Notes under the pieces: model-generated | Databases searched by the model: none | Seen by the model: the letters and a program-made list of their open reading frames with translations, nothing else | What the model was told of the DNA's origin: nothing | Assembly: GCF_052425735.1 (NCBI RefSeq) | Contig: NC_135760.1 | Location: 10,540,001-10,604,000 of the forward strand | Origin: Oculina patagonica | Lineage: Eukaryota | Direction: 5' to 3' | Length of the DNA: 64,000 bases | Shown here: positions 15,296-57,833 of the stretch, piece by piece | How positions within the stretch are numbered: position 1 is the first letter of the stretch | Layout of the letters: every line of letters starts with the position of its first letter | Translations under genes and position numbers: made by a program

Positions 15296-15795
15296 NNNNN
15301 NNNNNNNNNNNNNNNNNNNNNNNNNNNNNNNNNNNNNNNNNNNNNNNNNNNNNNNNNNNNNNNNNNNNNNNNNNNNNNNNNNNNNNNNNNNNNNNNNNNN
15401 NNNNNNNNNNNNNNNNNNNNNNNNNNNNNNNNNNNNNNNNNNNNNNNNNNNNNNNNNNNNNNNNNNNNNNNNNNNNNNNNNNNNNNNNNNNNNNNNNNNN
15501 NNNNNNNNNNNNNNNNNNNNNNNNNNNNNNNNNNNNNNNNNNNNNNNNNNNNNNNNNNNNNNNNNNNNNNNNNNNNNNNNNNNNNNNNNNNNNNNNNNNN
15601 NNNNNNNNNNNNNNNNNNNNNNNNNNNNNNNNNNNNNNNNNNNNNNNNNNNNNNNNNNNNNNNNNNNNNNNNNNNNNNNNNNNNNNNNNNNNNNNNNNNN
15701 NNNNNNNNNNNNNNNNNNNNNNNNNNNNNNNNNNNNNNNNNNNNNNNNNNNNNNNNNNNNNNNNNNNNNNNNNNNNNNNNNNNNNNNNNNNNNNN
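15296..15795. other. Assembly gap
   Basis: Run of N; further gaps at about 45803-46069 and 48087-48227. Confidence 0.99.
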
Positions 15796-16414: not shown

Positions 16415-16852
16415 TCGAAAACTAAATGTTATTGAAAACTGATTCAGTCTAATGCAAGCATTCCACACATTGGAATGTTTGTTGTCCACAAACTAAGTCA
16501 AGCCAGCATGAGCTTGGGAACCAACATTCATTTGCGAAAATTTTGATGAAGTTTAAAGAGTCCTCTTTTGACGATTCACAAACACGCTGGTGTGGGTCGG
16601 CTAGCAGTTCTTGCAAGGTCTTGCATGAATGGCTCCCTACCCTTCGAGAGAAAAACAGAACAAGTAACAGGTAATAATTATAACCCCTAGTCCCCCAAAC
16701 CAACAGCAACTGATACACAAGGGGACTAGCCTGCTACACTTCTGCCCGGGATGGGACACAAAGTCTGCCTATGCCCCCTCCCCATAGCTTAACATTGATA
16801 GTTGCATTAATAGCTGCTTCTATAAACATCATGGTTTTAATGTTCTTTTTAG

Positions 16853-19800: not shown

Positions 19801-19967
19801 ACCCTCCTGGTGACAGACAAGAAGGCGATGGTGCTGTCGTTTATGATGAAGACTTGCAGTTGGCCATGGCACTGTCAGAGCAGCAACTAGAGGAAGATGA
19901 AAGGCTGCGAAAACAAGAAGAGGAGGAGCTCGCAAAAGTCATTCAGCTCTCTCTGTCAGAGAATTAA
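16853..19967 (+). CDS. ANKRD13: ANKRD13 copy 2, last three coding exons
   Basis: Exons 16853-17104, 17870-18011 and 19745-19967 are intact and in frame, with protein nearly identical to copy 1; flanking homology runs from about 15800 to 21515. Confidence 0.88.
18020..19037 (-). mobile_element. 5'-truncated CR1/L2-type LINE (ORF2 C-terminus plus 3' UTR)
   Basis: Peptides ILPNLTYCHTVWHFC...KLERVQERAL...LPSLVNRRLQDILILMYK and NLRSSDFPIPRFNTVNYGKHSIRYLGPYLW; AATAAA plus TATG-repeat tail; absent from the copy-1 intron. Confidence 0.85.
18143..18257. repeat. Perfect palindrome, 57-bp arms with 1-nt spacer
   Basis: 18143-18199 is the exact reverse complement of 18201-18257. Confidence 0.95.
19233..19624. 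mobile_element. MITE (GGCC...GGCC termini, PIF/Harbinger-like)
   Basis: GGCCATTCCAATAAAATGTTGCGTTTCCCATCGCCC / GGGCAATGGGAAACGAAACATTTTGTTGGGATGGCC; absent from copy 1. Confidence 0.75.
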
Positions 19968-20618
19968 ACTCTAAGGCAGTCTCAGGTCAGCTTTAAACTC
20001 TCCTTTGTGCTTTAAATGCATTTCTTTGAATTCTGTTAGGAGAATTTGGTTTTCAGTCCAAATGTTTTTCCTGAGGTAATAAGTAAATTTATTTTTACCT
20101 GTTTGCTGGAATTTGTTATAAAATGTAAAGAGAGGTTCAAAATTACAATGAGACTATGTGACTGTAACTGGAGCTACCGGTACTTGTGTTTTAAACACAA
20201 ATGACATAAAATAATAAAAACAAAAGACAAATAGAATTACAATGCTGTGCCAAAATACAAGATACAATGTGTTCTTATTTGTCTGGTTCCGGCCTGAAAA
20301 AGGAGCCCTACTTTGACTCCACAATAAAAACCAATGACAAAGAATTTTAAAACTTTATTCCAAGCTGAAAGATTGCTTCAAATGCACTTTTTATGCTCAT
20401 TGTATTTTTCTCTCCCATAAAAAGTTTTTGGTTTTGACCTCCAACTGCACCCATCTCTCTGGTAATTCAAGTTTAGGCTGAGTTTGTACTTTCCTTTAAG
20501 AGCTGTCAGTGTCGGGGGGCGGTTTAAAAATAGGGTATATTGGTTCAAACAGCTAAATCTGAAATTCTTTGTCTCCATTTTTAGAAATTCACAGTGGTCT
20601 GGTTTTGTTGTCTTATAA

Positions 20619-25591: not shown

Positions 25592-28500
25592 TCACACTGC
25601 TGTGTTTAAACTGTTGTTACTTTTTCGTTCTGTATTGATGAGAAAGGAGCAATGATTTGAGTTGTAGCAAGATGTACTTTTGTATACTTGACTGTTGATC
25701 TCTTAATAAATGTCCTATTTTGTACTTTTATTTACAAATGCAAAACAATTAATTGTTACATTCAGATAATTTATTATTGTTAAAAACAGTTGGGCACTTT
25801 CTTGGCTTTGTGGATGGTGTGAATTTCTGCAACTGACTATAGTTCTATATCAAATACTCCAGGCAGTGTTTCATTGGCTATCCAAACCCCTTGAATTTCG
25901 TCAAAAATACTCTAGCTGCTGTGCATCATATTTTCAACTCTCTTCTTGGTGTTTGGTTATCCCAATGATACAAAGTCTCTCTTGTTGTGTGATATATTAC
26001 AACTAAAAACACAGTGCAGTATTTGTTTTCTTCTTGCATACCTTTGCCATCAATATGACCTTCTTTTTTGCAACAGCTTTCCTTCACTTTCTCAACAACT
26101 TGCTTTCTTTTTGCGCACATGATTAGTTCAAACACCACAACAATTAGGGTGACAAAACCCATTAAAGCAATGCCAATCTTGTAAGGAAGAACATCCACTG
26201 TCAAAAATAATAGAATTCTTGTTAATATAACAATTAATACATGTATGTATAGTTTAAGCCAAAGAGTACTCATTTGGTGTATTATCTTGGTGTGACTGTC
26301 AAGATAAGAATAACCTTGAGGCATGCTGCAGTGTAACAGTGACCTGCACATTGTATGACAAGTAAATATATGTCACTCTGGCCTGTCCACACAGTCAATA
26401 AGTAGATGTATACCATCAAAACTGAATTGATTTCATTAGGCATATAGGGTGAGGTATCAAATGAAATTGTAAGTGTGCTGTAAATCCCCCCCCCCCCCCC
26501 CGGATGGGATGCTAGTTTATTACAGATTGCTTCCAGAATTTTTTTTAATTTGCCCTACAGTGTAGGAACAGGTTACCAGTACAGTAGATTCCTGTTAATC
26601 TGGTCACTAACAGGCTACAAAAAACAAGCTAAAATAACAGGGACCCATATAAAAGAGGTTCTTGGAATAAGAAAATGACTGACACATGTGGGTCATCACA
26701 AAGTGCAAGGCAGTGAGGTGTGCAATCCATTCCGGTTAGCACTTTGGTTAGGCTAAATGGCAGTTTGGTTAGCCTACAGTTAGCTTAGGTAGCTTGCAGT
26801 TAGCTTTTTTTATTGGGATAAGGGATTTCTGTTTCACATGCCTTGCATGCCTTGCTGCTTTGCCTTGCATGCCTCACTGCCTCGCATATTTGTAAGACTC
26901 ACACACGTAAATGTTTTGTTCAGGCCAAAATAAAATGGCTGTAAATAAACAAGGTGGATCAGGGTTCACTGTACCCATTTTCACACCTGGTTGCAGAGGG
27001 GTACTGTGAGAGTGAAGTGTCTTGCTCAAGAACACAAAGCAACAAAAGGACCCTAGCCACGGATTGATCCAGGATCCAAATTTGTACTAACAACTAGACC
27101 ACGCCTACTACTGATAGATAAAAAGATAAAGTCTGTATTTGAGCCAAGTGGCCCATCAGCCTGGAGCTTATTTCAGTTTCTGTAGCATGTAGCAGCTAGG
27201 AGAATCAGCATTAAATTTGCTGGTACCAATTATGCACCTCAGGGTGGAGAGAGAGAGGCACTGTGGGAGTATTAGTAATTAGTGTCAGTTGCGGGAGAAC
27301 ACAACGCAGTGACCCTGGCCAAGGCTTGGATCCAGTCTGCTCAATCCAGACTTCAGTGCAAAAGAAAAGCCAACAGGCCTCATTAGCAACACAGTCACAG
27401 TGGATGCACTAAAAGTAACAATGCAGATTCCTCACCTTTTTCATTTTCACCGTGCTGTTTTCCAGTATCCGGACCACTTTTACATCTGCAGTTCTCTTCA
27501 TCAGGCACCTCTCCTTGGTCCCACTGGCATTCCAGGTTACATGTACAGTGGCAACTTGTATGATTATATACTGTGATAGTTTTGGGTTCTCCACTTAAGG
27601 GATCTTTTACTTCTAAAGAAATCGCCTCCCTCTTTGATGCTGTGCATGGTTTTTGACTGGGTGGAATGCTCTCGTCACAAGTTCCAGAGCAGCGATGTAG
27701 TAATATGTGAAAAGGTTTGTTCCCCTCGGTTTCTTGAACCACCACTGGTCTTGGCTGACATTTCTGCTCACTTAGTTTTACTGATGAGACTTTCACTGGG
27801 GAAAAACATAGTAAATATTTACACTTTTATATTTAGGAGAATGGGGGGGTGGGAGCCTTGAGCCATGCAGCCCATACCGCCAGAGCTTATCCCTGTTTCT
27901 GTATCATTAGGTGGCTAGGAATATTTTTACTCCCCCCTGAATGGGATGCTAGTCCATTGCAGGGTACCCCCCCCCCCCAGCATTATGTTGCCGTACCCAA
28001 TAATATACCTAGGTGGAGAGAGGCATTAAAAGAGTTAAGACAGATTCCGCTGAAAGTCCGAGCAATGAGTGCGAAAATTAAGTACCAAAAATCTACTCAT
28101 TGCACGGCAACATTTTGTACACTATTTAAAAGATCTCATCGAAATTTATTTGTCTTAGTGACCCCGCAATTAAATTCTAAAGCATTCTCGAGAAAATTAA
28201 AGTCAAACCTCGAAAAAATGTATTAAATGCGCGCCATTTTGTTTTGAACTGGCGCAAGACGTCCGTTTTAACTGAAATAAAGACAACTTCAAATCCATTT
28301 TTCTCTCGCAGGGTCAGCTTGAGTACTAAATTTTTGGCAGGTTTTTGTTAGCTGTACTAAAAACTGTTGCCATGCTAAGAGGTCTTTTTGGTAACTTTAT
28401 TTTTGCCTGTATTGCTCGAATATTGTGCGGAAACCATCTTAAGCAATTTGCCCAAGAACATAACACAGTGACTCCGGCCAGGGCTCAAATCCAGACTGAT

Positions 28501-30508
28501 CAATCCAGAGTACTACGCAGTAACCATTAGGCCACTGTGCCCCCCCGGGGCCCGTTTCTTAAAGGGGGGAAAACCTTCCCGGGGATAAATCTCTATCTAG
28601 TGGATATTGTATTTTTTTTTCCAACATTTTTCCTCTGGATATTTTTTTTTCTATGGAAAAGACAACCCCCCCTTAAAAAACGGGCCAGGTGAATAGAGTT
28701 GATAAAGGGGGCCAGGAAAATTCTATATCAGTAGTTCTGTCATTTTTGTTCATTCTTTCTTAAATTGTTACAACTTGAATTTCCAGAGCTTATTGACTTA
28801 AAATTTGAAGTATGATGTAAAATAAATTTATTAATTTTATGACACCTTGCTCAACCTTTGCCCAAATTAACACCAAACTTTATTGATGACGTTTTACTAT
28901 TATTTTTATGGGATTTTACCCCTAAACAATTATTGTTTAAAAAAAAACATATTGTCGCAACATTGTCGAAATAATTCTGTTAAAGCATTGCAGATATTGC
29001 TTTCTAAAGAATGACCTGGAGTCTGACTCAAATTATCTTCTACATCAATAAGAAGGCAGATGCAACTTGGTCGGTGCTACTAATTAATTAATGTCCATGC
29101 TATCCTCTGTGTAATTGATGAATAACAGTAGCCAATAAACTCCGGATAAATTTTGACAGTTGGAAGCTTTTTAAAAGCAAAGCGGCTCTCCTGGAGCTTG
29201 CTGAACGATTTCTTACGCTTGGCATCACAAGTCGCATCAAATATGAATGAGAAACGCCCAAACAAAATATCGGACAGTTTTACGGCTTTAAAGAGGATAA
29301 AAACTGTTCCTTGCTTTATTTATTTCTGAAGATTAAAAACTACGAGGTGGCAACTGTAATTGTTTACATAGAGAAATCGATCAGATAAGTTGCGTCTATA
29401 ACAACACTTGCGAACACACAAGATTTAAAGGCGCTACGAAAAACAAAAGACTTTAAGCAGTTAATGAAACAGGAATGAAATATTCTTTTTTGGTGCTGTT
29501 AAAAAGCCCACAAAACAAACACGAGCGCTACTGTTTTGTACATAAATAAAATCCCATCAAAGGTGACAAATTCCACACATTGCTTCCCACCATTTAAAGG
29601 GCTGCTGTTTGTGTAATCAAATTGTGATTTCGTAAGCAGAATTTCTCAGAAATTGCGAAAATTAGTTTGACTTCGCCCACATAACAGCCAACAAACATCC
29701 TTCGCTAACTTCTCACAAGTTGCCAAGCCACGGTTAGAATCACGAAATATTCCCATGTGTTCACTTACGCGGAAAATTTTTGGCGGTTTTTCGCGGAACC
29801 GTCATGATCATGAGTGAGTGCAGTTTCCTGACGCATAAAAAAACAAAGCAAATTCTCCTTCCTATTTAAAGACTTGGCATCGAAATAAAGCGAATGGGAG
29901 TGAAAATGATGTTGTTAAGTTCATTTATGAAGTCAAATCAAACGTTTTGATTCGTTCGAAATGTGTTGAAACCGACAAAAGGGTTTACATTTCACCACGG
30001 TAAATCCGCGCGCGCGATCAAATGATATACAAGCATGTAGCGTGAATGTTTTCGTACATAAACAGTTTTATTCAATTCATGGTCTTTATTAGAGATCAAT
30101 CCGAAATAATTTTTAAAACAGTTTCTCGAAAGAAAAGAAGGAAGGTTCTAATTGAAATCGGTTATTTTGTAGCTTCCGTAATAGTGATTTCTAAAGACTT
30201 GTTATCAAACAAATATCAAATTGATCGATGTTTTGAAATTTGCGGCGCCTCTTTCGTTGAGAATGATTATGACCTCAATCTATAATTTTTGATATCAGGC
30301 ACGTTGGGGTGATAAGTTTAAGAACTACTTCTAAAGAAGATGGGAAAGTGCTCGCTGCACGTGAAGTTGTAGTATTGAAATAGTATAGAGTATTGAAGTC
30401 GGCAAGCGCTCACTAACCTGATAACATAAGAAGAGTGACCACAAGGAAAGTAAAGATTGTTGATAGCCTTGTCAATGATCTACAACCACTGCATATGCCG
30501 CAATCCAT
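25592..30508 (-). CDS. Transmembrane PDGF/VEGF-domain protein V1 (short form)
   Basis: Exons 30508-30418 (signal MDCG...TIFTFLVVTLLMLS), 27795-27436 (CQPRP...HRCSGTC...KPC...NHTSCHCTC), 26197-26042 (TM IGIALMGFVTLIVVVFELIMC then AKRK), 25629-25592 (ERKSNNSLNTAV*); all phase-1 GT-AG junctions. Confidence 0.85.
26500..27105 (-). mobile_element. SINE interrupted by a Tc1/mariner MITE (26582-26971), which itself holds a second MITE (about 26687-26902)
   Basis: SINE halves on either side of TA|CAGTAG...CACTG|TA; inner inverted ends TGTGGGTCATCACAAA / TTTGTAAGACTCACA. Confidence 0.6.
27850..28540 (-). mobile_element. SINE interrupted by a TTAA-targeting DNA element (28039-28438, Kolobok-like)
   Basis: SINE body resumes after the duplicated TTAA; imperfect TIR GACAGATTCCGC / GCGGAAACCATC. 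Confidence 0.65.
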
Positions 30509-33500
30509 TTTTCTTCGGGTTGTTGTGTAATCCTGGGCGGAGATGGTTACCCGCTTCGTTTAACTGCGGAGAAACGAAGGTAATGAATGAATGAAGCACC
30601 GAAGGAACTTGTAAAATTATTACTCAAACGCCCCAGCCTCAGAGCCAATCAGGAACGAGGTCAAAGATAGTAAACTTCCGGTGGCTCGGTGCTGAGCGCG
30701 GAGAACCGGAAATTAATCCAAACACGCTCTCTTGCAAACTTTCAAAACTTTTGTTGACTCATGCACTTGATTTAAATTCCTGCAGTTTAAATAGTGGATT
30801 TTTGTCTGCTTATTGCTCAAAGAAGCTGATTTTGTGTCAATGTTTCCTCGGGGAAAAGAATTCAATTGTCAGAAACCCATGACCTTTATGTTTATGCGTC
30901 AGTGCTCCGATCTTTTTCCCAGCTACATTAGCTACGTGAAAAACCCATCCCAGATTCATTCATCTTCCTGTGTTGTTTTACTCGTAATGTACACACCCAG
31001 GGAGACCCAGGTAGAGGAAGTTGTACAACTTCAAAGCACTTCCAACTAACTAAATTTAATTTCTGTGAAGAGATATACAAACCACAGAATAGTCGAGTGC
31101 TCTATTTATTATCTGATCTTGGCGGTTTATATATTCCTGTTCCTGCCTATTAAATTCATCAGCCTAATAGAAAATATGCACTGTTGTGTAAATCAGACAT
31201 TGTTGGATTTGTTTGAATAAAAAAGAAAGCAAAGTTTTCTGCTTTAAAAATATGGCGCGCGCCGGGTTATTGAAGTCAACTTGAGATAGCTTGATGGGTA
31301 GTGAGCATTTTTTGTTGACCGATTTCAATTTTATCTTGTACCTATGAGCCACCATGCTTTACAATTTTTTTCTGTTTAGACTATTTACAAGAGTGGAAAC
31401 ATTCTTGTAGACCTCAGTAAAAGATTAAATAAATGGGGACCTTCGCTTTCAGGCTAGCCTAGATCTAGCGGGCTGGATATATTGCGGAAGACGGCACGCC
31501 TGAAGACAAAAGATAACTCGTATATTTGGTTGACTTCCTGAAGTTAAGTATGTACAACGATCGTTTTCATTTACGTTGTTCCTCTGTGGTTCCTGCGAAT
31601 GAATCTTCTGCGTGCAGGCATGCCGGTGAATAATAACACAGTTATTACTGTGTACCTCCGCTATAAAAGGAAGTTTTTCCGGTGATATCTTCCTGAAAAT
31701 TGTTACGTGAAGAACAATGTGTTGATCGCCCTAACGTCCTGTTCAATCTGCGAAGTACTATTTTCTTTTTTGGTTACGTTCTTAAATGATGTTCTGCGGT
31801 TAACTTAAAATACCGTAATTGGCGCTTGCTTTCGCAGTTAGTCACTCAAACTTTATTTGTTCAACTGTATGAGGTACAGTGTATAGACGTCATAAGTGAC
31901 GTAAATACAGAGCGATCATGCGAAACGTCCAATCTCGAGCAAATGTTTTTAGGCAAAAATTCATTCGCAACACAATATGAGTAAAATATAGTTATATTAG
32001 TGTAAAAGTGGAATATTTCAGCCAATTGCGCCTCGATAGATGAGGATAAGAAACTTATGAGAGTCTTTTTATAGTGAGTCTGCCTTGGAAGACATGAGTT
32101 TTGCGAGGGTGCTACATACATGCACGTGGTCGAGCTTTTAATAAAACGCGAATGCATGCATGATCGAACAGGATAATTACTCTAATCAAGGCCATTCATT
32201 TAGATCTAAACATGGCTTTAAAAGGCATTAATAGAAAGTGATATCTCACTATTACACAGCACATTTGCTTTTATATTCAGTCATACCGAATTATTAGACC
32301 TGTTAATGTGTTACTTCCGAAACAGTCACCTTTTTACTGTTGTTGTGGACAACGAAACGAGCTTTGCTAACAAGCTCTAATAATCTTTAAAAATTGGACT
32401 TGAAAAGTGAAGCAATTATCGCCGAAATTGAACCCACATAAAAGTATTTAACTCACGTGTTATTAAACCAGAATGTCTCGATGAAAAGAAAATCAATTAA
32501 TTTCTTACCTTAATTGCTTTTAAGATCAAAAATCCTTTATCCCGATTAGAAGAAAATACTTTCCTGCTGACTTAGTGTGAGTTCAGCTTTTAGTAGGGTA
32601 GTTTTGGTCCCCCTGGTTGAAGTGTGTGTTCGGTTTATACTGTAATAAAAACGCACCCACCTGTAAATCGGTTTATATCAATCAATTCCGCGGAGGTGGA
32701 ATTTCAGAAATGTCGGTTGCTCCGTTACACCTAAATATTTGCCATAAATTTAGAACAAAAGTTGACAAGGAGTGGTATTAGGCAAGACTTTGTTATTTAG
32801 TCGCGGTGTCCGTAGAAAATAAACGTCATAAAAAGGTGGATTGCTCTAGATTGATAAAGCTAAAAATAATGCGTCGACCTTTGTTAGCAATTTTAAGATG
32901 ATCTTGAGCAAAACAGAGATTATCGTGGGTTAGTGTTTTAAAACGTCGTCAACAATCTGTCACACTTGAACAGTCTAGACTTGTAGTCCCATACTGTGAT
33001 AAAAAAAAATTCAATATTTATTGCCAGTATTATGTTTGTGACATAAACTTTAAAAAAGTTTGTAGATTCGAAACTATTTAGGACATTCTTTCACTTTTGA
33101 TTTTTTTAGATCAAGGAACATGTCGTCTTTCCTGTTGTCTTGTTTTTGTTTTCCAGTATACCATGCAACGGAAAATAACATACACTTACAAAACAAGACT
33201 CCCACATGTCTAATAAAGCGTGGGCCTTGGTTTGATGTTTTCAATTAGCTCAATATAGATTTTTAAAAATTTGTTATCGCTAATTAATTCTTCACTTCCG
33301 GTTTCCACGGATCTCCGCCAAACACTGACGTCATACTAAATGTTTTCGATACCAAGGCGGCAAAAGATTACGGACAATTTCAAGAGCACTCGAGATGTGA
33401 AACTTCGTCTGATAATGTGACCGGTCAAGCAACCACCGGAGATTTCCGACAATATCCGAACATAAAGTCGATAACTCCTCGACCAGCGACGCGCACCCGA

Positions 33501-36047
33501 ATTTGGCAAAGCCCAAACTTGACAAGAATCGAAACAGTTATATTTTTTACAAAACATTCTCACGGGTAGGTAGGCAATTTTTTTAGAGGCTTCCGCAAAG
33601 GAAACGCTTACATGCCTAAGTATTTTTGGAAGCCGGCTTCGTCTTTTTTTGTTTGTTTAGAAATTTCTGGTTACTTAATTTGTTTCATTGTTGTGACCAC
33701 ACTTGGATTCCAGCTAAGTAAAGCCTCAGCTAGCCTGAACAGAAGGCAGAAAGTCTTTTTAGTATCCCGTGTAATCTCGTGATTTTCTTATCGTAAGATA
33801 TTTTCGTAGCTTCCGATTTTTAAGAAGCTTATGCCTATCAGCTCAGTAAATCGATCTTAATTTACTTATCTCTATTTTCACTTACGGTCCGTAGAGAAAT
33901 CTTCCGCAGGAGGAAATCCTCGTGTTTCGAAGACAGATTTAATACGTAATTGTTATCTCTGTGTTTCGCTGTTTCGTTTTTGCGTCGTAAATTGACAGCA
34001 CAATCGAAATAATTAATAATCCGCTGAAGTTAGAACTACTTTTTAAAAAAAAAAAAAAAATCTGTTTGGCCCAAAGTTATTGACTGTCTATTAGACTCAA
34101 TTTACACTAAGCAAAACACACAAAAAAACACTGAGAATCATGTTCAATGTCGCACATTTCAGACTCATTTCAGACCATTTCAAGTTTGCACCTTGTTTAC
34201 GAAGAAATGAAAGTCTGAATTGTGGCGCGTTTGCAAGTGTTTACGAAGAAATTAAAGTAATTGTGGCGCTTCAAATCAATGCGTAAAATTAACGATTTCC
34301 TTTCGAAGCGATTAGCGGATTAGATCTTATTGAATTTAGCGAAAAGTGGAACGGCACTGTTTTTTAGAAGGCAGGTTCGGCCACTGGCTGGGCTGCCATT
34401 GTTAGAATTATGGGGTTTCACAGAAACCCGAATTGCAAACTTTGAATAACAACATAATTCGGGGCTAAAACTAACATGTTCGTGAAGCCTCTGGACCCCC
34501 CCCCCCCCCCCCCTTGTAGACAGTCGGCAAATATCAAAAAGTTCAGAAGCGAGGCTAATCCCCATTATATCAATTGGATTAAACAAGCTTAAACTAATAC
34601 AATAAGTAAGCTTGTGGATCAACTATAAAACCGATGTTATCGAATGGAAACGTTAACTGGGGTTAGTGGCTAAGATGGTAGTGTTTTCTATTAGCCGCAG
34701 AATCGAGACATTATTTCAAGACATTTTCACCACTATTTATTTGTAATATAATAAAAAAAAAGATATTAGGCAACTCGTAACCCAGGGCCCCCCCCCTCCA
34801 GAGCGAGACCAGACCCAACCAGGGCCCTCTCCACTGGGGGGCGGGAGAGAAAGTCCTGGAACGAGGTGGAATAGGGTGATAGAAGTAATATGAGCGAGTG
34901 TTGCTATAATGTTGCTACAATGCACAAACATTCCTAAATTCCAATTCAACCTGGCCTGGAGCCGGACCGCCCCAGACCCGCACAAAAACTAGCTCGGGCT
35001 GAATTGGCTTCCTCTCTAAATATTGTAATTTAAGTTTTCAAACTATAATGGAAGAATCTTGACGAATCAGCAGTGAAAAGTGACACAACAACGTTGAACA
35101 GCAAATGTTTCAGTGTCTGATTGTTTCCACGGCAAAGTGTTGTTTAAAAATTCTTTCCCGCCAAAACAATTGAATGACTGACAAATGACAAGAATTAAAA
35201 GATATATGGTGAGTGAAACTCGACTAAGCTTGCAATTCAGTGTTGTTGTCGGATTTTTTCGGGATTAGATTTCTTTCTTTGCTGATCTTGTACCCAGCTC
35301 TTCAAGCATTCCTAAATACTAGTTAAATATTAGTTAAAAATTGAGAGATCTTTTCCTTTCAGTGAGCTTACCTTTTGAATTCACTCCTATACAAAGTAGA
35401 TTACTGTGGCTACCACGATTTTAGAATAGTCACAGAAACGATTGGAAATTTTCTTTCCAACGAAATATTTATACCATTCATTTCGCCACCTATTTTTAAA
35501 CTAACATATTATTGGCTTTTACACGCTGAGCTCAAAAAATGGAGTTCCTTTAAAAATACTGGGAAGTTGACACTCGACAAATTTTCAAGTTATAAATAAG
35601 CTCGTTTATGGTACATACGTTTTTCCTAATAAGGTTTTAATCTACTTAGAGTTTAAGATTCCCAGAAATTGGCTTCAGTAAAGAGAGGAATTCACCCATG
35701 TCATTCACATAATGAAATTATCCGCACAGGAAGGGGGAAGAGTAAGATTAAGTTTTATGTAAATCCAGCACGACAGCACTAATCTGGATATCTTTGAAAA
35801 CGTATATCTTTCTTTGGTTTGGCCTAAGGTCCACAATAAAAACGGAGCTTTAGGTAATCGAAAAGGGAGCTTTAAGAAAACGTTTCCGGAGCTGAAAAAT
35901 GTGAAAACGCTGGCTAGGTGGTGTAGTGTGGACGGCCGAAAGTCAACAAAACGCTGTCGTCACAAAGATCCTCAAAGTCGTATTTAGCACGGGCTCAAGT
36001 AATGGCGCATGCTCCAATAAGCGTTTTCAAACTTATATCGATATTAA

Positions 36048-36594
36048 CCCTATTCAGACCGGGCTTTTTGGTCCAGACCGGGGGGGGGGGGGCGGACCGC
36101 CCCCCCCCTCCGACTCCAGAATATTTAAGCAATCACAATGAAACACAGGATATATAGTATGTCCCAAATCATCTTGCATATGTCACGTGGGATGATAACG
36201 TCACTATGTGATGACATCATATTTCAAAACAGCCGCCATCTGGATCCGCCATCTGGATTTCGAATTTTTCAAAACGTCAGAAAACCGCCCAAAATATGGA
36301 AAATACTCAAAACCAATAAAAATGTGCTTAAAACCCGTAAACATATGAAAATAATTGCTTTAAAGTTATTTTTCATTAATAGAAACAGGAAAATTACAAA
36401 TTTGGGAAAACATGCCTGTCAAAATGCCGTGCCATGGTGACGTCAGTTCCTGACACAACAACCTACCCTACCAAATTATTCCCAGATAAATTTTAGATAA
36501 AGTCTCCAAGTTTGGCAGCGTTTGGTTGAATATTAAAAAAGTTATAAGCGTTCAAAGTCGGCGCGGGCTTTCCGCCCCCCCGGTCTGGATAGGG
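36048..36594. mobile_element. piggyBac-type MITE
   Basis: TTAA|CCCTATTCAGACCGGG...CCCGGTCTGGATAGGG|TTAA. Confidence 0.85.
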
Positions 36595-37640
36595 TTAAAC
36601 ATTTTATTTATTTTTTGGGTGAAAACTCCGTTTTTGAATTTATCCGGATTAGCTGAGTGTGGACGGGCTATTGTTGCTACTAGCCTGGTGCGTTCACAGG
36701 GTGTTGACTGATGTGTGACGCATTCACGATTGTGGTTCATTTTGCTGACTTCCTTCTCGTGTAATACCGTGACGTATTTACCGTACAGTCGTGGGCGGCC
36801 TTTCTTCGCGACACAATGTTTGTTGTGGAGATGTGGATCGATGAATGAATCAATCGATCAATCAATAAATTATTGAGGAACCCAGGCCGACGTTTGCGAA
36901 CGGGGACTGTAGGTAGTCGCACTCTTTTTATCATACATACATACTTCCAAATAAAAACACAGGATTTTCTTATTGGGTCATGAAAAACACAATATTAAAT
37001 TAAAAACAGACTGTGTTCCTTTTCAGCCCTGGTTAACTTTCATTCTCGCCGTTTTGGGCCTTATTCCAATTTTCTTTTTTATTTCAGATCTTCCTTTTCT
37101 TAATTTCAATTAATTAGCCTTATTTGGCAAATCATTATCTTCGTCACTTACGTCACTTAGTTAAATTGATTTTTAAGGGTTTTGTTTTTGGCGCATTTCC
37201 TGTCCTGTATGATATACGTAGACTTGCGAAGATATACGTAGACTTGCGGGTTCACGGGAAATCCCCGAAACAGGCTCGAAAGGAACTTGTTCAGTCAGCT
37301 GAACAAGTGTCAAATAACTCTATCAAGCAGTCCGTTCATGAAAATACTGTTAATCTTTATTTTGCACTTGTTTTCAAGGTCTTAAATATTTCTTTACAAT
37401 AAATAATCATCTTTCGGGGTTTTGCTTGCATTTCATGCATGCAGCTTTCACTGAAATTAATAAATATTAAATAACTTTATCGAGCTTACTGAACTCGAAG
37501 AAACAATTTTGTACACTTTTCTTAGCCGTAGCTTTCGAATTAAATAGACATGCCCTCAGTGTGAGGCATTGAAAATAATATCAAACTCCTGTTACTAATA
37601 TCCTTCACTTCGGATATGAGTCGGACCTGCTGCTTTGATT

Positions 37641-50790: not shown

Positions 50791-51722
50791 GGCCAAATTT
50801 AAACAAGTCTTCTCTCTTCGTCTTAGCTTAGGGGTGTTGTTTCAGTGTTAACAGTCAGTAATCCAAGCAGAAGGACCAGGAGCTCACTCCTTCGCCGCCG
50901 ATTTGCAAAGTACTACTATGCTAATATGTTCGTTTCTGATCGATATCTGAAAGCCGACTTCCTTTCAAATCGTCTGAAAGCGAATGCAAATCAACCCAGT
51001 CACGAGACGTAATTAGATAAGCGCAGAACAAAAGGTTAAAAGGCAAAGGAAGTAAAAAATAGCGCCGCTAAGTCAACGCCTTTTATGTTTTATGTTTAAA
51101 TTGTATTCAAGTACCGCAAGGGGTTTTCCCTTTTCCCCACCCGCTTAATTATAGCGTGAGAAAAAAAAGTAAAAACCACTGCGTTGAATAGATTCTTAGA
51201 ATTAATAAACATTGGCTTGCATAAGGGTTCACACCCCTTTTATCACACGATAGAAGAATAAACTTCAGGATGTTTTAAAACAAAATTGTTTGATGACCGG
51301 AAACATGTTATTACCGAGTTCATGATATGACTCCCGATTCCTGAGTCCTCTTGACGCACGCATACGGCAAAATATTGATTCTTCTAAAATCGATACGTAC
51401 ACGCCAATTTCCTTTGACGTATGTGTACGACAAAATGTTACACGTTGCCTCCTTGCTAAAAATATTTGTTTCTTTTTCTGGACAAGAAGAATAAGAAGCT
51501 AGTTGTAAAGTACCTAAACTTGCTCGTGTGCACGGCTCGATAAGAGAAACGTAATCGAGGAATTAGAACTTATGACGTCATGAGAGGAGAAAGTAATATT
51601 TGATCATCATACTTTATCAGGCTTTTAAAATGGGAAATAAAACCAATTAATCAGTTTTCCATATATTTTCCGTATTTTTTTCCCGCGAACTTTGACTTAT
51701 ACTGGTACGAATGTATAATGTA

Positions 51723-51901
51723 CAGTTGAATCCCGATAATTCGAACCTTCAAGGGAAATCGAAAAAGGTTCGAATTATCGGGGGCTCGAGTTATCGAGGG
51801 TAAAATTTGTAAAAAGAAAATGACCTGGAGGGGAATCGAAAAAGGTTCGAGTTAGCGCGAGGTTCCAGTTACTGAAAGTTCGAGTAATCGGGATTCAACT
51901 G
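51723..51901. mobile_element. Tc1/mariner MITE
   Basis: TA|CAGTTGAATCCCGAT...ATCGGGATTCAACTG|TA. Confidence 0.85.
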
Positions 51902-52468
51902 TATAGGGAAAATCCCGAATAATATGGGATTGCGGTCACAAATTTTCCCGACTAGGGTCTTTTTTTTATTTTATGTCGGGAAATTCCAGGCCATCGGGAA
52001 CTTCGTTTTTCTACCATTTGACCCAAATCTCGGTATTTTCGGTTAAAAACCAAATAGAAGAGTCATTTTCCGGAAGTTATTTTCGAGAATTGTGCGCTAC
52101 GTTTCATTCCGGTCGGTCAAACTGTCGAAAAACTTTTTACTACTTATAATCCATCTCTCTTGTTTCCAGTCTCTTATCAAGAGAAAAACATAACTTCTAA
52201 CCGTAAACTGCATTATAAATGGTAAGCGCCATCTCTTTCGGTCGGTCTGCTGATTTGGAAAAATACACACCACTGGTCATTCTAACCAGTTTATTTTGGC
52301 AAATGAAAATTATCCCTGGTTCTTGACGCCTTGTCTAGTACCTAGGCCTCTATTTTCGTCGCAGTCAAACCGTTTCGGGTCACGTGGAATTTCGTATCAG
52401 ATAAGTCACTGAAATGAATTGACCGTGCGGGCCTGGGAAAGAACGCCGTACAGGAACTAGGCTTGTTA

Positions 52469-52762
52469 CATTCTCGTCTTTCTTAGCCGGCTGCACCTTG
52501 GCACGAGATAACAAAGGGCTCTGGGGACACAGGATTTCCAGTCCTAGATTCTAGGACTTCCGGTCTTCATGTATGCAGTCATGACGTTTCAAAAGAATGT
52601 ATGACAGAGTCGTTACGTTTTCGACTTCCGTTTAGGAATTCTTTGTTCCAAACAGCCAATCAAAAAAATCGAATTAATTCAAAAATCCTATGTCTCCAGA
52701 GCCCTTTGTTTTCTCGTGCCAAGCCGGCTAAGAGAAACGAAAGGGCTATGGGGACGAGAATG
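52469..52762. mobile_element. Long-TIR MITE (relatives at about 23120-23400 and 46395-46474)
   Basis: CATTCTCGTC...GGCACGAGATAACAAAGGGCTCTGGGGACA / TGTCTCCAGAGCCCTTTGTTTTCTCGTGCC...GACGAGAATG. Confidence 0.75.
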
Positions 52763-54140
52763 GGCTTATTATTACTATTTAAGACTTCGCCATCACTGCC
52801 CCCCGTCACTCCCACCACCCCCTACCCCATTTGGCGATTAGCTATGGCGACTGGGAAAAAGTTTATAGTTTATATCATTCTTTTTGCGGTAGTTGTTTTG
52901 GATGACAATTTAAAAATCATTCCTGATCGAAACGCCAGCTCACAGGCTATTTAAATTTTTTAAAATCGGCTATAAATTTTACAATTGGTTACTCTCCTCA
53001 TGTTCCTCATGTTATAATGGGATGGAATTTTCTTTCAGTTTCGTAGCATTGTATATGGTATATAAATTTCCGTCAAGAAATTAGTAGCAACCAAAGGGTA
53101 TATCAGGGTACATAGAGAATGGTTTTCACATCCAGTTAAAATCTCCGAAGAAACGAAAACAGAAACATTTGCTACGATATATACAATTTATTATTTTGTT
53201 TATTTTTTCAATATTTAACACCATTTTTCTCTTTGAAAGTAACAAGCTAAATAATGGAAGCGTTAACAATATCGTACACGAAGTATTGACTGCGCATGTT
53301 TATTTCTTAACCGCAAGAAACACAAAGACGCTGGGTAGGAGATTTCTGGAATACAAAAGGTCACGTGATATTACCACTACTTTATCTGCCGCCAATTCGT
53401 GGTGGCTACACTTTATCAACTATTATTGATAAGAAATATTGTTGAAATATAAAGTTCTTTTCTCAGAAAAGATAATATACCGAAGGGATTAAATATACAT
53501 TTGTATATCTTATGAATGAAGTTTCCTTCATTTTACACTATACTCAACTACTTTATTTCCGACACAAGCTAAGATATTTGTTGTTTGCTAGTGGTACAAA
53601 TGTCTGGTGTACCCCTGATTAAAGCAAAGTAAAACTCTTCTTCGAATGAAAGATTTTGAACCAGTAACTTTTACAGATGTAACTGGCTTTTATAGAAAAA
53701 GACCTATTAACTGACCAATGACTTCCAACAACGTGTCGTATTTGGTAATCTTTACAGATTTTACATTCAACAAAATTGCGGAATGGTTCTTTATATTTCG
53801 CACTTACGTCAAACGATTTCATTTCCACTAAAAGATTATATTTTTACAAGTTGACTATATGTGTCATGGAAACGGCTAAGCACAGAACGAAGCAAAAGAC
53901 AAAATACCTATCTCTTTCGGTTACCCATTAACGGCAGGGAGCCATGAAAGGCGGTTATATTCGTAACCATTCGCTTCTTTCAGTCACTAATAAACTCGAC
54001 AGTGTCCAAAAACACGATTTGTCTTATTGCCTTAAATGATGGTTGTCTTAGGGTCTAAATATCGCGGAATTTTTCTTGACTTGCATCCCGCGTCTCTTCC
54101 GTATTTACTGCCCATGAGATACTGTATTTATATCCAGGTC

Positions 54141-57100
54141 TTATATATCTGTTACCCGTGGTTTTGGAGACAGGGGAGCAGTGCAGCTGTCATTATCACT
54201 CGACTCCTTTGCACCATCTATGGAATCTGTAGAATCAGACTCAACAGCCACCTCTAAATCTGCAAAATACAACGTGGAAAAATTCTCATTAATGTTTATA
54301 AGACTGCAGGACCTCTGGCCAACCTAAAGCATTACATTGTATATATTTCAAGCGAGTGGCCTGGGGGCTGTTAGATGGTATACTGACTTTTTCTGAAGTA
54401 CAATTCAAGGAAAATTTAACAACTTCATGAGTATCGCATATCAATTTATCTAGATCGGGAAGGGGGGGGGGGGAGAGAAATACAAAATACTCAAAACCCT
54501 ATTGTAAGGTGGCATCATTGGATCAATTTAGGTTTCTGGGAAACTGCTCACCTACCCCTCCCCAAACTTAACATTAACCCTTACTTATCGCTTTGGGCAA
54601 AATGTTAGGTTTGGGGAGGGGTAGGTGAGCAGTTTCCCAGAAACCTAAATTGATCCGCATCATTTAGCACTGCCAACAATAAACACTTAACCCCTGCCAT
54701 CTTTTGGTGGTAGCTTTTGTTACTTTTTCCCTGTTTTCTAAAGTATTCCGTTCAAGGGCTACTTGATAAACTTCAAGGAACTGGGAAATTCTTTACGCCG
54801 GAAAAAGGTTTGTGGGAACCGTAAAACTACATTTACTACAAAAGGACGCGGTCAAGTGCTGTCAGACATGACGCATGCAATAAAGTTCTCACGCAGCGTC
54901 AATCCCACCCCTTCCCCGTTTAGGTTGTTTTGTGGAATTTCCAACAGTTAATCAAAGTTTAAAGAGCAAAAATGCTTGAGGGAATTTCAAAAAATCTTAC
55001 AGTACAGTGCTCTTTTCATTTCTTTACCTTTTTCCCAAAAATGCCTTTATTGCAATCTACTTAAAAGTACAAATATTCTAAAAAGACACTTACAGGGTGG
55101 AGAAATATCATCATTAGTCTTGCACGAGTCTAATCTGTCGAGAGCGGAATGGGCCGAGCTCTGTTGGTTTCTTTTTCGTACCCAGTGCACAAGAGCACAG
55201 ATGAGGAGAATGATTAGCACAGCTTGACCAATCAGAAGCGTTATGAACATATGGGTCCGCGATTGAACTGCAAATTGAAACAAAATGGTGTAATATTTAA
55301 TATGTAAGTTTTAATGAGGCAACGAAAGTAATTATCACGTAATACATTGGAATGTATTGTATTGTTATATAGCTAGAATTTTTCCCCAACTGCGCGCGCT
55401 CTTATTGGCTAAATCTATGACGTCAGAGGGTAACATTGCAATGTTGCCCGCGAATGCTGACCCACGAGCGCCATTTCATTTCTTCGTCGTGCTGTACAAC
55501 AAAACACTTAATGACTGATGAGTGTATATTGTAAAGGTAGATAAACTATGTTATTATACCTGTTTTGTGATCGCGGAAGGCCCGCTGCACGTCTACGCAC
55601 TTGCAGTCTACATCAATTCCCATTTTCATTTGTGTACAGTCATTCACAACACTGTCAGGGCACCTACAGCCACAAATGTCATTGCTCCACACCTGAACAA
55701 GACGAGTAACAAAATAGATCGATTATTGATGCAATAGAGCCTCACAGTTAACTTTACCAGTAATGATACAACTTATAGACCTCAGGAGATTATTACTGGG
55801 GAGTGTGTATTAGACCAAGGGTTTTGAGTATAAAAATAGTGTAATTGTAGTCAGGGGATGACATAGTTTGTTAGTGATTTGACGCTGACTGTTTTTTATG
55901 CCATTTTTCCAAATCGTCTCGGCTAGTGCTTAAGCCTTCATCAGTTAAATAATCAATGCTGTTACACGCGATTTAAAAAGGCAACACGTTTGCGCACGCT
56001 GCAAAAATTTAGGTTTTGCGTGTAAGGGTTTGATTTTGCAACCCTACAAGACAGGTTTTGCGTATAACGTAGTCTCTTTTTAGCACGTAGTTTGTCCGCG
56101 AAACATAGGTTTGAATACGTAGGCACCAGCTGTTTAACCTCATTTGCATGTAGCAGACGAGAGACCGATTCGAGATAGGACACTGGAAACATGATTGCGC
56201 ACTGTATGCCGACGCTGTCTAGGTGCCAAATTGCTCATAGACAGCAGTCTTGGAGCATAGAAAACAGCTTGTGATGTAAGACTTACCATTCCTGGACAAG
56301 GGTCAGGTGCTCGATCACATTCGCATTTGCATTTATGGCTGTTCCACCTGAAGGAGAATAAAAATAGTTAAATTTTAGTAAAACTAAACAACCAATTGGG
56401 AGAAGTACCATAAACACGGGATTTACAAGACTCGTCGCCACCACTAACAGAAGTTATAAATGCACACGGCATCGGTAAAGTGAAAGTATAGTTTATTCTT
56501 TCCACTGCTGACTTCATAAATGAACAAAGATACCATTTCATTCATATTTCCAATTCATAGTCTTTTCTCCGAGTAACAATTGCAAAGCATTCTGAAAGGC
56601 TGACAAAGCCGACAAACCTAGTGAAATACATGTATTGAGACTATTTACGCATTCAAGTTTAATTTGGTCAGTTAATTTCAATTTCATTAAAAAAATTTAT
56701 GCGTTCGTTTTGCATTAAGTTTTTCAAATTCGCTGAACAAAAGTGAAGTGCGCTGTCTTCAATTTGTGGCTAAATGATGTTTTTGTTGAGCCACTTGGCT
56801 AGAATTGGGATTTTTTTAAGAAACCAAAGCTAATACGTAAATGATTGAACAAGTCGCACACTTACCTAAAGCCGTCTTTGCAAGCGAGTTCTTTTGGTGG
56901 TCCGTTGGGATACCTGCACTTGCAAGCGCAGAGGTCATTGCTCCAGTCCTGCACGGTCAAATCACAATCAGCGGGACTGGCGACACACTCGTGAGCGCAG
57001 CTTGTGTGATTCTTCATCGTGATGGTTGCACGACGAAAGTTGGTCGAGCGCGAATAAACTTGAATGTTTAACTCGTCGTAGCTTTTGACCACGCAGTGCT

Positions 57101-57833
57101 GGACTTTTGGGGAAACTGTGTTCGCCGAACCAGCGCATCGGTGGAGCTTGACAAAATACGGGAAATAGCCGTGATCGTTGGGGTCCACGGGAACCACAGT
57201 TTCATGCGTTTTACAGTGAATATTTTCCAAATCTGCGAAGAATAAAATGGTTATTATCAGTATTATTATAAATATCACCAGAAACTTAGCAGGTGGGTGG
57301 GTGGGAGGGAGGGTTGCGGGTCGACGGAATGGTGGTAGTGGGGGGAGGGGGAGAGGGATGGGGTGTTGGCGGTTGATGGGGACTGCTTGTAATACCCACT
57401 AATACGTTCATCCGAGTCGTTAATATTCCACTAAATTCCGTTTGACTTTTAAACCTATAACTTTTATAAAGCTACTAACCCCCGAGGGGACACGCCGCAG
57501 CTTCAAGACGTGAATTCATTACCCTTTTAATACCCAAGCTGGAAAAGGCACACTTCTTTCGAGCGGAACCTCCCCGTATCGTCTAGTCTACTATAGGCGG
57601 ACTACCCCAGGGGTATGACACTTTTTCAGTTTGATTTGTCCTCTTTCCGTTGCGGAAAACAATCTGAGAGCTGGGAACAAGTCAAATGAGACTCTCTGAT
57701 AACAATCAAGATCGAAACATTTACGCTACTTACTTTTCACTTTTTTAGCAGAAACCGTCATATCCATCAGTTCCAACAGACACAGGAAAAATATTATTGA
57801 CACTCTGGCGGGACTGTTAGCTTTATTTGCCAT
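54141..57833 (-). CDS. Transmembrane PDGF/VEGF-domain protein V4 (degenerate cystine knot)
   Basis: Exons 57833-57734 (MANKANSPARVSIIFFLCLLELMDMTVSA), 57232-56866 (PYFVKLHRCAGSA...QHC...NHTSCAHEC), 56347-56287, 55692-55560, 55267-55094 (TM MFITLLIGQAVLIILLICALVHWV then RKR), 54259-54141 (YLEVAV...KPRVTDI*). Confidence 0.9.
54520..54656. mobile_element. 137-bp fold-back MITE, GG...CC ends, 8-bp TSD
   Basis: About 55-bp near-perfect arms; TSD GCATCATT at 54512-54519 and 54657-54664. Confidence 0.9.

Follow-up and report, generated by a model that had tools for sequence, protein, structure and literature searches.

Four tandem genes for membrane-anchored PDGF/VEGF-like proteins in Oculina patagonica encode tails with class I PDZ-type endings

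The window, by which we mean the whole stretch of 64,000 nucleotides of Oculina patagonica contig NC_135760.1 that was analyzed, contains four tandem genes on the minus strand, labeled V1, V2, V3 and V4. In each predicted protein a signal peptide and a PDGF/VEGF cystine-knot domain are combined with one transmembrane helix and a short tail in the cytosol, and in each the tail is encoded by a last exon of its own. Cysteine repeats of the BR3P type are present in V2, V3 and V4. The splice sites and their phases were read by hand, and the four models were then assembled in frame. The genes, their exons and two assembly gaps are as follows, with positions counted along the window.

25592..30508, minus strand: V1 gene, ACROYT_G009369, 214 aa; the spliced model equals the deposited protein
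V1 exons, minus strand: signal peptide ~30508-30418; knot 27795-27436; transmembrane 26197-26042; last exon 25629-25592
37641..40604, minus strand: V2 gene, ACROYT_G009370, 298 aa; the spliced model equals the deposited protein
V2 exons, minus strand: signal peptide ~40604-40553; knot 40209-39785; BR3P 39188-39029; transmembrane 38481-38347; last exon 37765-37641
45344..50790, minus strand: V3 gene, model of ~284 aa, collinear with Stylophora XP_022798398, six-exon structure
V3 exons, 5' part, minus strand: candidate signal peptide 50790-50717; knot 48890-48506; BR3P mini-exon 47864-47801
V3 exons, 3' part, minus strand: BR3P 47113-46978; transmembrane 46298-46146; last exon 45387-45344
54141..57833, minus strand: V4 gene, LOC144646480, 317 aa; the spliced model equals the deposited protein
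V4 exons, 5' part, minus strand: signal peptide ~57833-57734; knot 57232-56866; BR3P mini-exon 56347-56287
V4 exons, 3' part, minus strand: BR3P 55692-55560; transmembrane 55267-55094; last exon 54259-54141
45803..46069, no strand: assembly gap in the last V3 intron, which follows the transmembrane exon; splice phases match across the gap
48087..48227, no strand: assembly gap in the intron that separates the V3 knot exon from the first BR3P mini-exon

A mixed-alignment search that included V3's own exons recovered no O. patagonica V3 protein among the deposited proteins, and V3 therefore stands without transcript or annotation support from the same species. From the knot exon on, V3 is modelled with five exons, collinear with V4 and the Stylophora orthologue alike. 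No residues are lost at the junction that spans the gap at 48087-48227, where the V3 protein remains collinear with V4 and the orthologues. At the place matching the gap at 45803-46069, the Stylophora orthologue has no exon and passes directly from the transmembrane exon to the last exon; the phases match, but this gap could still conceal a small additional V3 exon. The last exon of V3 is supported by the Stylophora exon structure and by a [YF]-E-S-x-V ending common to the orthologues, which end in YESAV or YESVV, similar to the FESAV of V3 itself.

The first-pass annotation of this DNA had reported that all four tails end in a class I PDZ-binding motif, read there as S/T-x-V/I. The motif, taken here as S/T at position -2 with V, I or L as the last residue, is present in each of the four endings (NTAV, ATHV, ESAV and VTDI), which were located on the minus strand as LNTAV at 25592 (V1), AATHV at 37641 (V2), FESAV at 45344 (V3) and RVTDI at 54141 (V4), and those of V1, V2 and V4 match the deposited proteins. 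Each ending also proved to lie on a separate terminal exon, as had been described, with an AG acceptor and a phase 1 intron, in agreement with the donor of the transmembrane exon before it. The remainder of the tails is dissimilar, again as first noted: they measure 36, 59, 35 and 70 residues in V1, V2, V3 and V4, respectively, and BLAST comparison of the paralogues is non-significant past the transmembrane region. Among plausible phase-compatible acceptors, endings that give the motif were 1 of 19 distinct endings for V1, 1 of 23 for V2, 1 of 16 for V3 and 3 of 22 for V4. An artefact of exon picking was ruled out, the V1, V2 and V4 models being equal to the deposited proteins and V3 fitting the exon structure of its orthologue.

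V1-V4 are tandem paralogues and belong to a family of cnidarian PDGF/VEGF-like (VEGF-C-like) proteins with a predicted type I membrane anchor. When single exons were searched, the knot exon of V2 matched PF00341 with 31 bits (cut-off 27), V4 (20.7) and V1 (16.7) scored below the cut-off, and V3 gave no PF00341 match; the full-length V proteins gave no Pfam match at E <= 0.01, although their single exons match this domain. The family profile matches the sequences of solved VEGF-A/B/C/D/E, PlGF and PDGF-B, with E values of 2e-9 to 1e-4. In an AF2 model of V4, the ectodomain has the PDGF/VEGF fold (pLDDT 96-98), residues 222-257 form a helix and the tail is disordered (pLDDT <50). The top 49 Foldseek matches of this model are PDGF-B, VEGF-A/B/C/E/F and PlGF, with target-normalised TM-scores of 0.6-0.72 and with PDGF-B, VEGF-A and VEGF-C in the lead, and an ESM Atlas look-up matched cnidarian VEGF-like clusters. 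The knot cysteines of V1 and V2 follow the patterns R-C-x-G-x-C and C-x-C-x-C; in V3 and V4 the second Cys is replaced by W or A, and the later motif has two Cys only. The ectodomains contain many cysteines and a near-invariant N-H-T sequon, and K/R follows each transmembrane segment. Taken with the N-terminal signal sequence and the single transmembrane helix, the sequon and the K/R residues predict in silico that the C-termini of V1-V4 are cytosolic.

Members of this family, including proteins of Stylophora, Nematostella and Hydra, were surveyed as cnidarian 'VEGF-C-like' proteins by Rauniyar et al. 2023 (PMC10328876), who treated them as VEGF-like growth factors; the words 'transmembrane' and 'PDZ' are absent from that survey. 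In the cnidarian 'VEGF-C-like' proteins and in VEGF-C/D alike, a VEGF homology domain is followed by BR3P (CX10CXCXC) repeats, and the interchain cysteines are often absent (PMC10328876). Vertebrate VEGF-C/D differ from V1-V4 in lacking a membrane anchor, being secreted as pro-proteins.

The class I motif ends 49 of the 94 transmembrane-bearing family representatives, a count of homologues that are not phylogenetically independent; a quick tree gives approximately 15 changes of state. Likewise, the four of four endings in the window are not four independent events, because paralogues share ancestry. S/T occupies position -2 in 53 of the 94, against a combined S+T share of 18% in tail composition, while 26 of the 94 (about a quarter) have no hydrophobic C-terminus, some of which may be gene-prediction errors. 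Within the tails of the family, [ST]-x-[VIL] is found at 2.4% of internal positions, and as a control, family members that lack a transmembrane segment have a class I ending in 3 of 36 cases, one of the three being a mis-predicted V4 orthologue. Pure chance was ruled out by this internal-tail background, by the alternative-acceptor rates given above and by the control without transmembrane segments, and the class I-type ending of the V1-V4 tails is confirmed as a real feature. The motif is also present in family members from Hydra, Rhopilema and Aurelia, and Logan transcript contigs, for example L002, back full open reading frames with such ends. A 60-sequence profile search of a large protein set returned matches that were almost exclusively of the V4 type.

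The degree of conservation differs among the four lineages. The [ST]-x-[VIL] ending is found in 11/11 V4 orthologues, whose last residue is I or L in all except one, and in 10/10 V3 orthologues, in which the remaining tail is barely alignable; Val is the last residue of V3 and of nearly all its orthologues. In the V1 group the ending is kept in 5/7; the Orbicella orthologue and a relative, P0267, end in AAV and ASV, with Ala at -2 in both. S/T at -2 is retained in 4/8 representatives of the V2 group, where Stylophora and its relatives end in AVV or VAV and one sequence ends in GDV, and a close relative with 86% identity ends in AAHA. Terminal Val is near-universal in the V1 and V2 groups, including where position -2 is Ala, Val or Gly. 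The earlier proposal that selection keeps the C-terminal motif is, from these comparisons of sequences, well supported for the V3 and V4 lineages, but for V1 and V2 it is mainly the terminal Val that is kept. Similarly, the expectation that orthologues would hold S/T at -2 and V/I at position 0 is borne out in V3 and V4, with V, I or L at position 0, and fails in part of the V1 and V2 groups.

How might such an ending be used? Most likely, the free cytosolic X-[S/T]-X-[V/I] end would serve as a class I PDZ ligand, and PDZ proteins acting through this C-terminus would control transport to the cell surface, or retention and polarised presentation there, in a mode modelled on proTGF-alpha and Delta-like 1. 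The VEGF-like factors V1-V4 would then be juxtacrine or locally shed ligands. We consider it reasonably probable that V1-V4 are membrane-anchored VEGF-like ligands with PDZ-dependent sorting or presentation; the PDZ binding, the partners and the effect on sorting are what we infer from the predicted proteins. The targeting to junctions that had been suggested is putative.

Of the precedents among membrane ligands that had been invoked, the V1-V4 motif fits proTGF-alpha with syntenin and MAGI, and Dll1 with MAGI1 (PMC10135703, PMC8428372). The C-terminus of proTGF-alpha binds syntenin and MAGI-family PDZ proteins and directs surface trafficking in polarised epithelia (PMC10135703, PMC8428372). 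As a growth-factor precursor anchored as a type I membrane protein, with a class I-type end (T-V-V), proTGF-alpha resembles V1-V4, but its ectodomain has the EGF fold and it signals through EGFR, whereas V1-V4 have a PDGF/VEGF cystine knot, joined in V2-V4 by BR3P repeats. MAGI1 brings Dll1 to adherens junctions, and ephrin-B, a reverse-signalling ligand, binds syntenin (PMC8428372, PMC10135703); the PDZ motif of ephrin-B is of class II (PMC10135703). Delta-like 1/4 and ephrin-B resemble V1-V4 as transmembrane ligands with C-terminal PDZ-type ends, which for V1-V4 are predicted, but their ectodomains and receptors are unrelated.

A less probable alternative, to which we would give perhaps one chance among several, is that the constraint falls on a hydrophobic or valine signal at the C-terminus for ER export and Golgi transit (COPII Sec24, GRASP55/65), with S/T at -2 secondary and no junctional or polarity scaffold involved. 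The precedents named for valine export are Kit ligand, CD8-alpha, HLA-F and proTGF-alpha. Membrane-bound Kit ligand and CSF-1, both anchored as type I membrane proteins, act on receptor tyrosine kinases of the PDGFR class, a likeness to the membrane-anchored V1-V4 that, for Kit ligand, counts in favor of this alternative; unlike V1-V4, both are four-helix bundles, and the signal described is a terminal Val alone and not S/T-x-V. Without its C-terminal valine, Kit ligand is blocked in ER export, ER export by a C-terminal valine is likewise reported for CD8 and HLA-F, and Grasp55 PDZ domains bind valine-ended cargo (PMC11470877). Terminal Val is also the most widely retained residue, being last in 52 of the 94 transmembrane-bearing representatives and in nearly all V1- and V2-type orthologues. 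However, the V4-type proteins, with the one exception, end in I or L, and therefore a valine-only export signal does not account for them. A signal confined to position 0 also does not predict S/T at -2, which is found in 21/21 V3- and V4-type orthologues, nor the class I motif carried by 49/68 of the hydrophobic-ended family members. Since the GRASP route is itself PDZ-mediated, this alternative overlaps with the main explanation, and a role of the C-terminal valine in ER export fits part of the pattern equally well as a PDZ role.

Reverse signalling into the ligand-bearing cell, as in ephrin-B, with the PDZ motif and tail Tyr/Ser recruiting adaptors on receptor engagement, is speculative for V1-V4 and in our judgment improbable, its case being made by analogy alone. 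Besides the ephrin-B and Delta precedents (PMC10135703), what speaks for it are the extra conserved tail motifs of the V4 and V2 types. V4-type tails have P-Y-L-E-V and, after it, an acidic Ser/Thr cluster, plus A-P-L-S-P-K. The YLEV that had been read over the last junction of V4 does form there, T from the transmembrane exon and AT from the last exon together encoding Tyr, and this junction Tyr is kept in 10/11 V4-type orthologues, with the Y-x-x-V form in 8. V2-type tails have a membrane-adjacent K-K-A-G-L-I-Y-R that is conserved out to Nematostella and Actinia. Against reverse signalling, the tails lack any catalytic or docking domain, and all four do not have a conserved Tyr in common; comparison of the orthologue tails found no broadly conserved Tyr in V1 or V3, where tails of ~35 residues have little conserved besides the end.

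Finally, that the common ending reflects inheritance with little or no function, or an artefact of last-exon choice, is very improbable: the loss of the motif in several V1- and V2-type orthologues and the very short last exons of V1 (12 codons) and V3 (14 codons) would suit it, but independent annotation confirms the exon choice for V1, V2 and V4, the motif persists over Anthozoa and Medusozoa while the adjacent tail has diverged past alignment, and it is rare both at internal tail positions and among family members that lack a transmembrane segment.

VEGF and PDGF are known from textbooks as secreted factors. The literature that we found on membrane-anchored, membrane-tethered or transmembrane VEGF consisted of receptor papers only, with no such VEGF-family ligand or PDZ tail. 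Many VEGF-like proteins across Anthozoa and Medusozoa are nevertheless predicted type I membrane proteins whose tails carry a PDZ-type ending, kept without exception in the V3 and V4 lineages, which suggests that in cnidarians VEGF/PDGF-like factors normally regarded as "secreted" undergo sorting or presentation at the cell surface. Kit ligand in its membrane-bound form and proTGF-alpha offer a parallel, although the anchored VEGF-like proteins arose on a different fold. If the ending is functional, cnidarian VEGF-like signalling would be contact-dependent or locally released and coupled to the epithelial polarity machinery, and the expression of VEGF/VEGFR in Hydra, Nematostella and corals (tentacle, gastrovascular canal, budding, regeneration) would need rereading. 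It is tempting, if doubtful, to speculate further that the membrane anchor and PDZ-binding end are ancestral for cnidarian VEGF-like ligands, and that early VEGF/PDGF-type signalling was juxtacrine and polarity-coupled, with ligands placed by scaffolds of the Dlg/Scribble/MAGI type and possibly signalling in reverse, so that the free secretion seen in bilaterians would be a later simplification.

One ceriantharian homologue in the family is annotated as a 'toxin candidate'; a venom role is unlikely for this protein because it has a membrane anchor and a cytosolic tail.

Stop-to-stop open reading frames on the minus strand fell into four like exon sets, V1 to V4, each with one exon carrying a PDGF/VEGF-type cysteine pattern (the knot exon), one exon coding for a hydrophobic run of roughly 20 residues with basic residues behind it, and a short last exon; CXCXC-type repeats were found on one or two exons in V2-V4. 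The first-pass annotation had reported that all four tails end in a class I PDZ-binding motif (S/T-x-V/I at the C terminus, counted below as [ST]-x-[VIL]), and a six-frame search recovered all four endings:

Stop codon ending at 25592, minus strand, V1, ending LNTAV
Stop codon ending at 37641, minus strand, V2, ending AATHV
Stop codon ending at 45344, minus strand, V3, ending FESAV
Stop codon ending at 54141, minus strand, V4, ending RVTDI

Splice sites were read by hand and the exons joined by script, giving sequences with no internal stop. Phase-1 introns precede the knot exon and lie on both sides of the transmembrane exon in each of the four genes, and the proposed separate last exons were borne out by an AG acceptor in matching phase. 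The YLEV described across the last junction of V4 was also found, its tyrosine codon being split there, with one base from the transmembrane exon and two from the last exon. In the knot exons of V3 (48890-48506) and V4 (57232-56866) the second cysteine of R-C-x-G-x-C is absent, with W and A instead, and only two cysteines occur at the site of C-x-C-x-C in V1 and V2; as read from the sequence, these differences suggest the paired loss of one knot disulfide.

The window comes from the scleractinian coral Oculina patagonica, and the V1 and V2 models are identical to that species' deposited proteins ACROYT_G009369 (214 aa) and ACROYT_G009370 (298 aa), and the V4 model is identical across 283 residues to LOC144646480 (317 aa); the signal-peptide exons of these three genes were taken from the deposited proteins. 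The relatives search found no deposited protein for V3, whose exon order is the same as that of V4. The Stylophora V3 orthologue, XP_022798398, has six exons on a genomic contig, the last directly after the transmembrane exon. Two assembly gaps fall within V3:

48087-48227, assembly gap separating the V3 knot exon from the first mini-exon of the Cys repeats (BR3P); across it the protein runs collinear with its paralogues and orthologues
45803-46069, assembly gap in the last V3 intron; splice phases match across it

A small hidden exon could, formally, lie inside the second gap. A reader could also be drawn to motif-bearing endings among alternative acceptors. As a control for this bias, all phase-compatible acceptors that have a pyrimidine tract and lie no more than 3 kb from the donor of the transmembrane exon were considered, and the distinct endings giving [ST]-x-[VIL] numbered 1 of 19 for V1, 1 of 23 for V2, 1 of 16 for V3 and 3 of 22 for V4. 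The observation of four endings stands because independent annotations pick the same exons.

Using Pfam, PF00341 scored 31 bits with the V2 knot exon, above the cut-off, 20.7 with V4 and 16.7 with V1, while V3 gave only a weak VEGF_C match. The V2 knot exon alone (39782-40219) matched PF00341 at E 3e-7; its full-length counterpart in this comparison, the retrieved protein P0233, had no Pfam match at E <= 0.01, probably owing to composition or the bias filter, and this miss may explain the "uncharacterized" annotation of these proteins. A 60-sequence full-length profile matched the solved VEGF-A/B/C/D/E, PlGF and PDGF-B (E 2e-9 to 1e-4). The AlphaFold2 model of V4 (mean pLDDT 83, ectodomain up to 96-98, tail <50) has a long helix at 222-257, and its top Foldseek matches were PDGF-B, VEGF-A and VEGF-C. 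In silico, the proteins show features of type I topology and a disordered cytosolic tail.

With the V2 knot exon as query, phmmer returned 459 relatives. Named relatives were all cnidarians: the anthozoans Stylophora, Porites, Montipora, Acropora, Orbicella, Desmophyllum, Pocillopora, Actinia, Nematostella and Ceriantheomorphe, and the medusozoans Hydra, Rhopilema and Aurelia. Database labels were "VEGF-C-like", "VEGF-D-like", "balbiani ring protein 3-like" or "uncharacterized". On a single Stylophora contig the V4-, V3- and V2-type genes follow one another in this same order, and the cluster is therefore conserved. A Ceriantheomorphe brasiliensis homologue deposited as a "toxin candidate" (P0011) has a 71-residue tail behind a strong transmembrane segment; anchored in the membrane, it is a doubtful candidate for a secreted venom.

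All retrieved relatives were kept in which a hydrophobic segment had at least 8 cysteines ahead of it and a tail of 8 residues or more behind it; clustering at 85% identity left 94 representatives. The [ST]-x-[VIL] ending was present in 49 of these, compared with 2.4% at internal tail positions; 68 of 94 end in V, I or L, and 53 of 94 have S or T at -2, against 18% S+T in tail composition. Among 36 relatives lacking a hydrophobic segment, three had a class I ending, one of them a mis-predicted V4 orthologue. Since family counts are not independent, a tree was built from the ectodomain and transmembrane region with the tails left out.

Class I endings by orthogroup
V4-type: 11/11; typically T-D/N-I/L, S-P-V in Acropora millepora
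V3-type: 10/10; typically Y-E-S-A/V-V, V-T-A-V, T-T-V
V1-type: 5/7; terminal V in all, EAAV in Orbicella, PASV in another
V2-type: 4/8; terminal V in all, also AVV, VAV, GDV

Conservation of the motif in orthologues thus held throughout the V4- and V3-type groups and only in part in the V1- and V2-type groups; an 86%-identical relative of V2 ends in AAHA, having lost both key residues. Two medusozoan clades retain the motif in 7 of 7 and 6 of 7 rows. Purifying selection on the C-terminal class I PDZ-type motif is seen, at a minimum, in the V3 lineage, the V4 lineage and the medusozoan relatives.

The motif would bind PDZ domains, and these would control whether the protein is delivered to a membrane domain or kept there. 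The endings E-T-D-I, V-T-D-I, E-T-N-L and the like are presumably similar to those bound by PDZ domains of the Dlg and Scribble type. Membrane ligands with PDZ tails have precedents: proTGF-alpha binds syntenin and MAGI, and MAGI1 recruits Dll1 to adherens junctions (PMC10135703, PMC8428372). The main rival is that the C-terminal valine is an ER-export or GRASP-dependent transit signal, as reported for Kit ligand, CD8 and HLA-F (PMC11470877). Such a signal accounts for the near-universal terminal valine of the V1 and V2 lineages, but not for the I/L endings of V4-type proteins, nor for the strictness with which V3 and V4 lineages keep S/T at -2. The two explanations overlap, because the GRASP route is itself PDZ-based. 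Reverse signalling into the ligand-bearing cell is a speculative reading by analogy.

Growth-factor precursors that are anchored in the membrane and carry a PDZ-binding tail are a known design. For cnidarian VEGF-like ligands, whose proteins are already in public databases, the membrane anchor and PDZ-type ending appear undescribed in the searchable literature, because a VEGF-diversity survey covering them (PMC10328876) contains neither "transmembrane" nor "PDZ" and literature searches on membrane-anchored VEGF ligands yielded only receptor papers. A Hydra VEGF/FGF preprint applies "transmembrane" to receptors only.

In the tail alignment, hardly anything except the ending is conserved in the V3 group, and V4 tails are conserved throughout, including P-Y-L-E-V-A-V-E-S-x-S-T and A-P-L-S-P-K. 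At the V4 last exon (54259-54141), two blocks are kept in most V4-type orthologues, Y-L-E-V with an acidic Ser/Thr cluster (E-S-x-S-T-D/E-S) after it, and A-P-L-S-P-K; these blocks are candidate sorting or phosphorylation sites. V2-type tails (V2 transmembrane exon 38481-38347 and last exon 37765-37641) have a juxtamembrane Y-x-K-K-A-G-L-I-Y-R, conserved out to Nematostella and Actinia, and further blocks S-R-E-D-I-F-S and T-D-L-P-T-E-T-G; all of this cytosolic conservation bears no relation to the C-terminal motif. The five predicted isoforms X1-X5 of a Montipora capricornis "VEGF-D-like" protein (P0200-P0204) use alternative last exons directly after the transmembrane exon, and only the 306-aa isoform, whose cluster contains the majority of the transcript contigs (about 60), has a class I ending (S-M-V). 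The motif might be switched on or off by alternative splicing.

Elsewhere in the window, the 3' part of an ANKRD13-like gene, with UIM-coding exons, has a partial second copy (16765-20476 versus 6777-9079), 87-93% identical and in the same orientation. It sits just past a 500-N gap (15296-15795) and may reflect either a true segmental duplication or an artefact of assembly or haplotigs.
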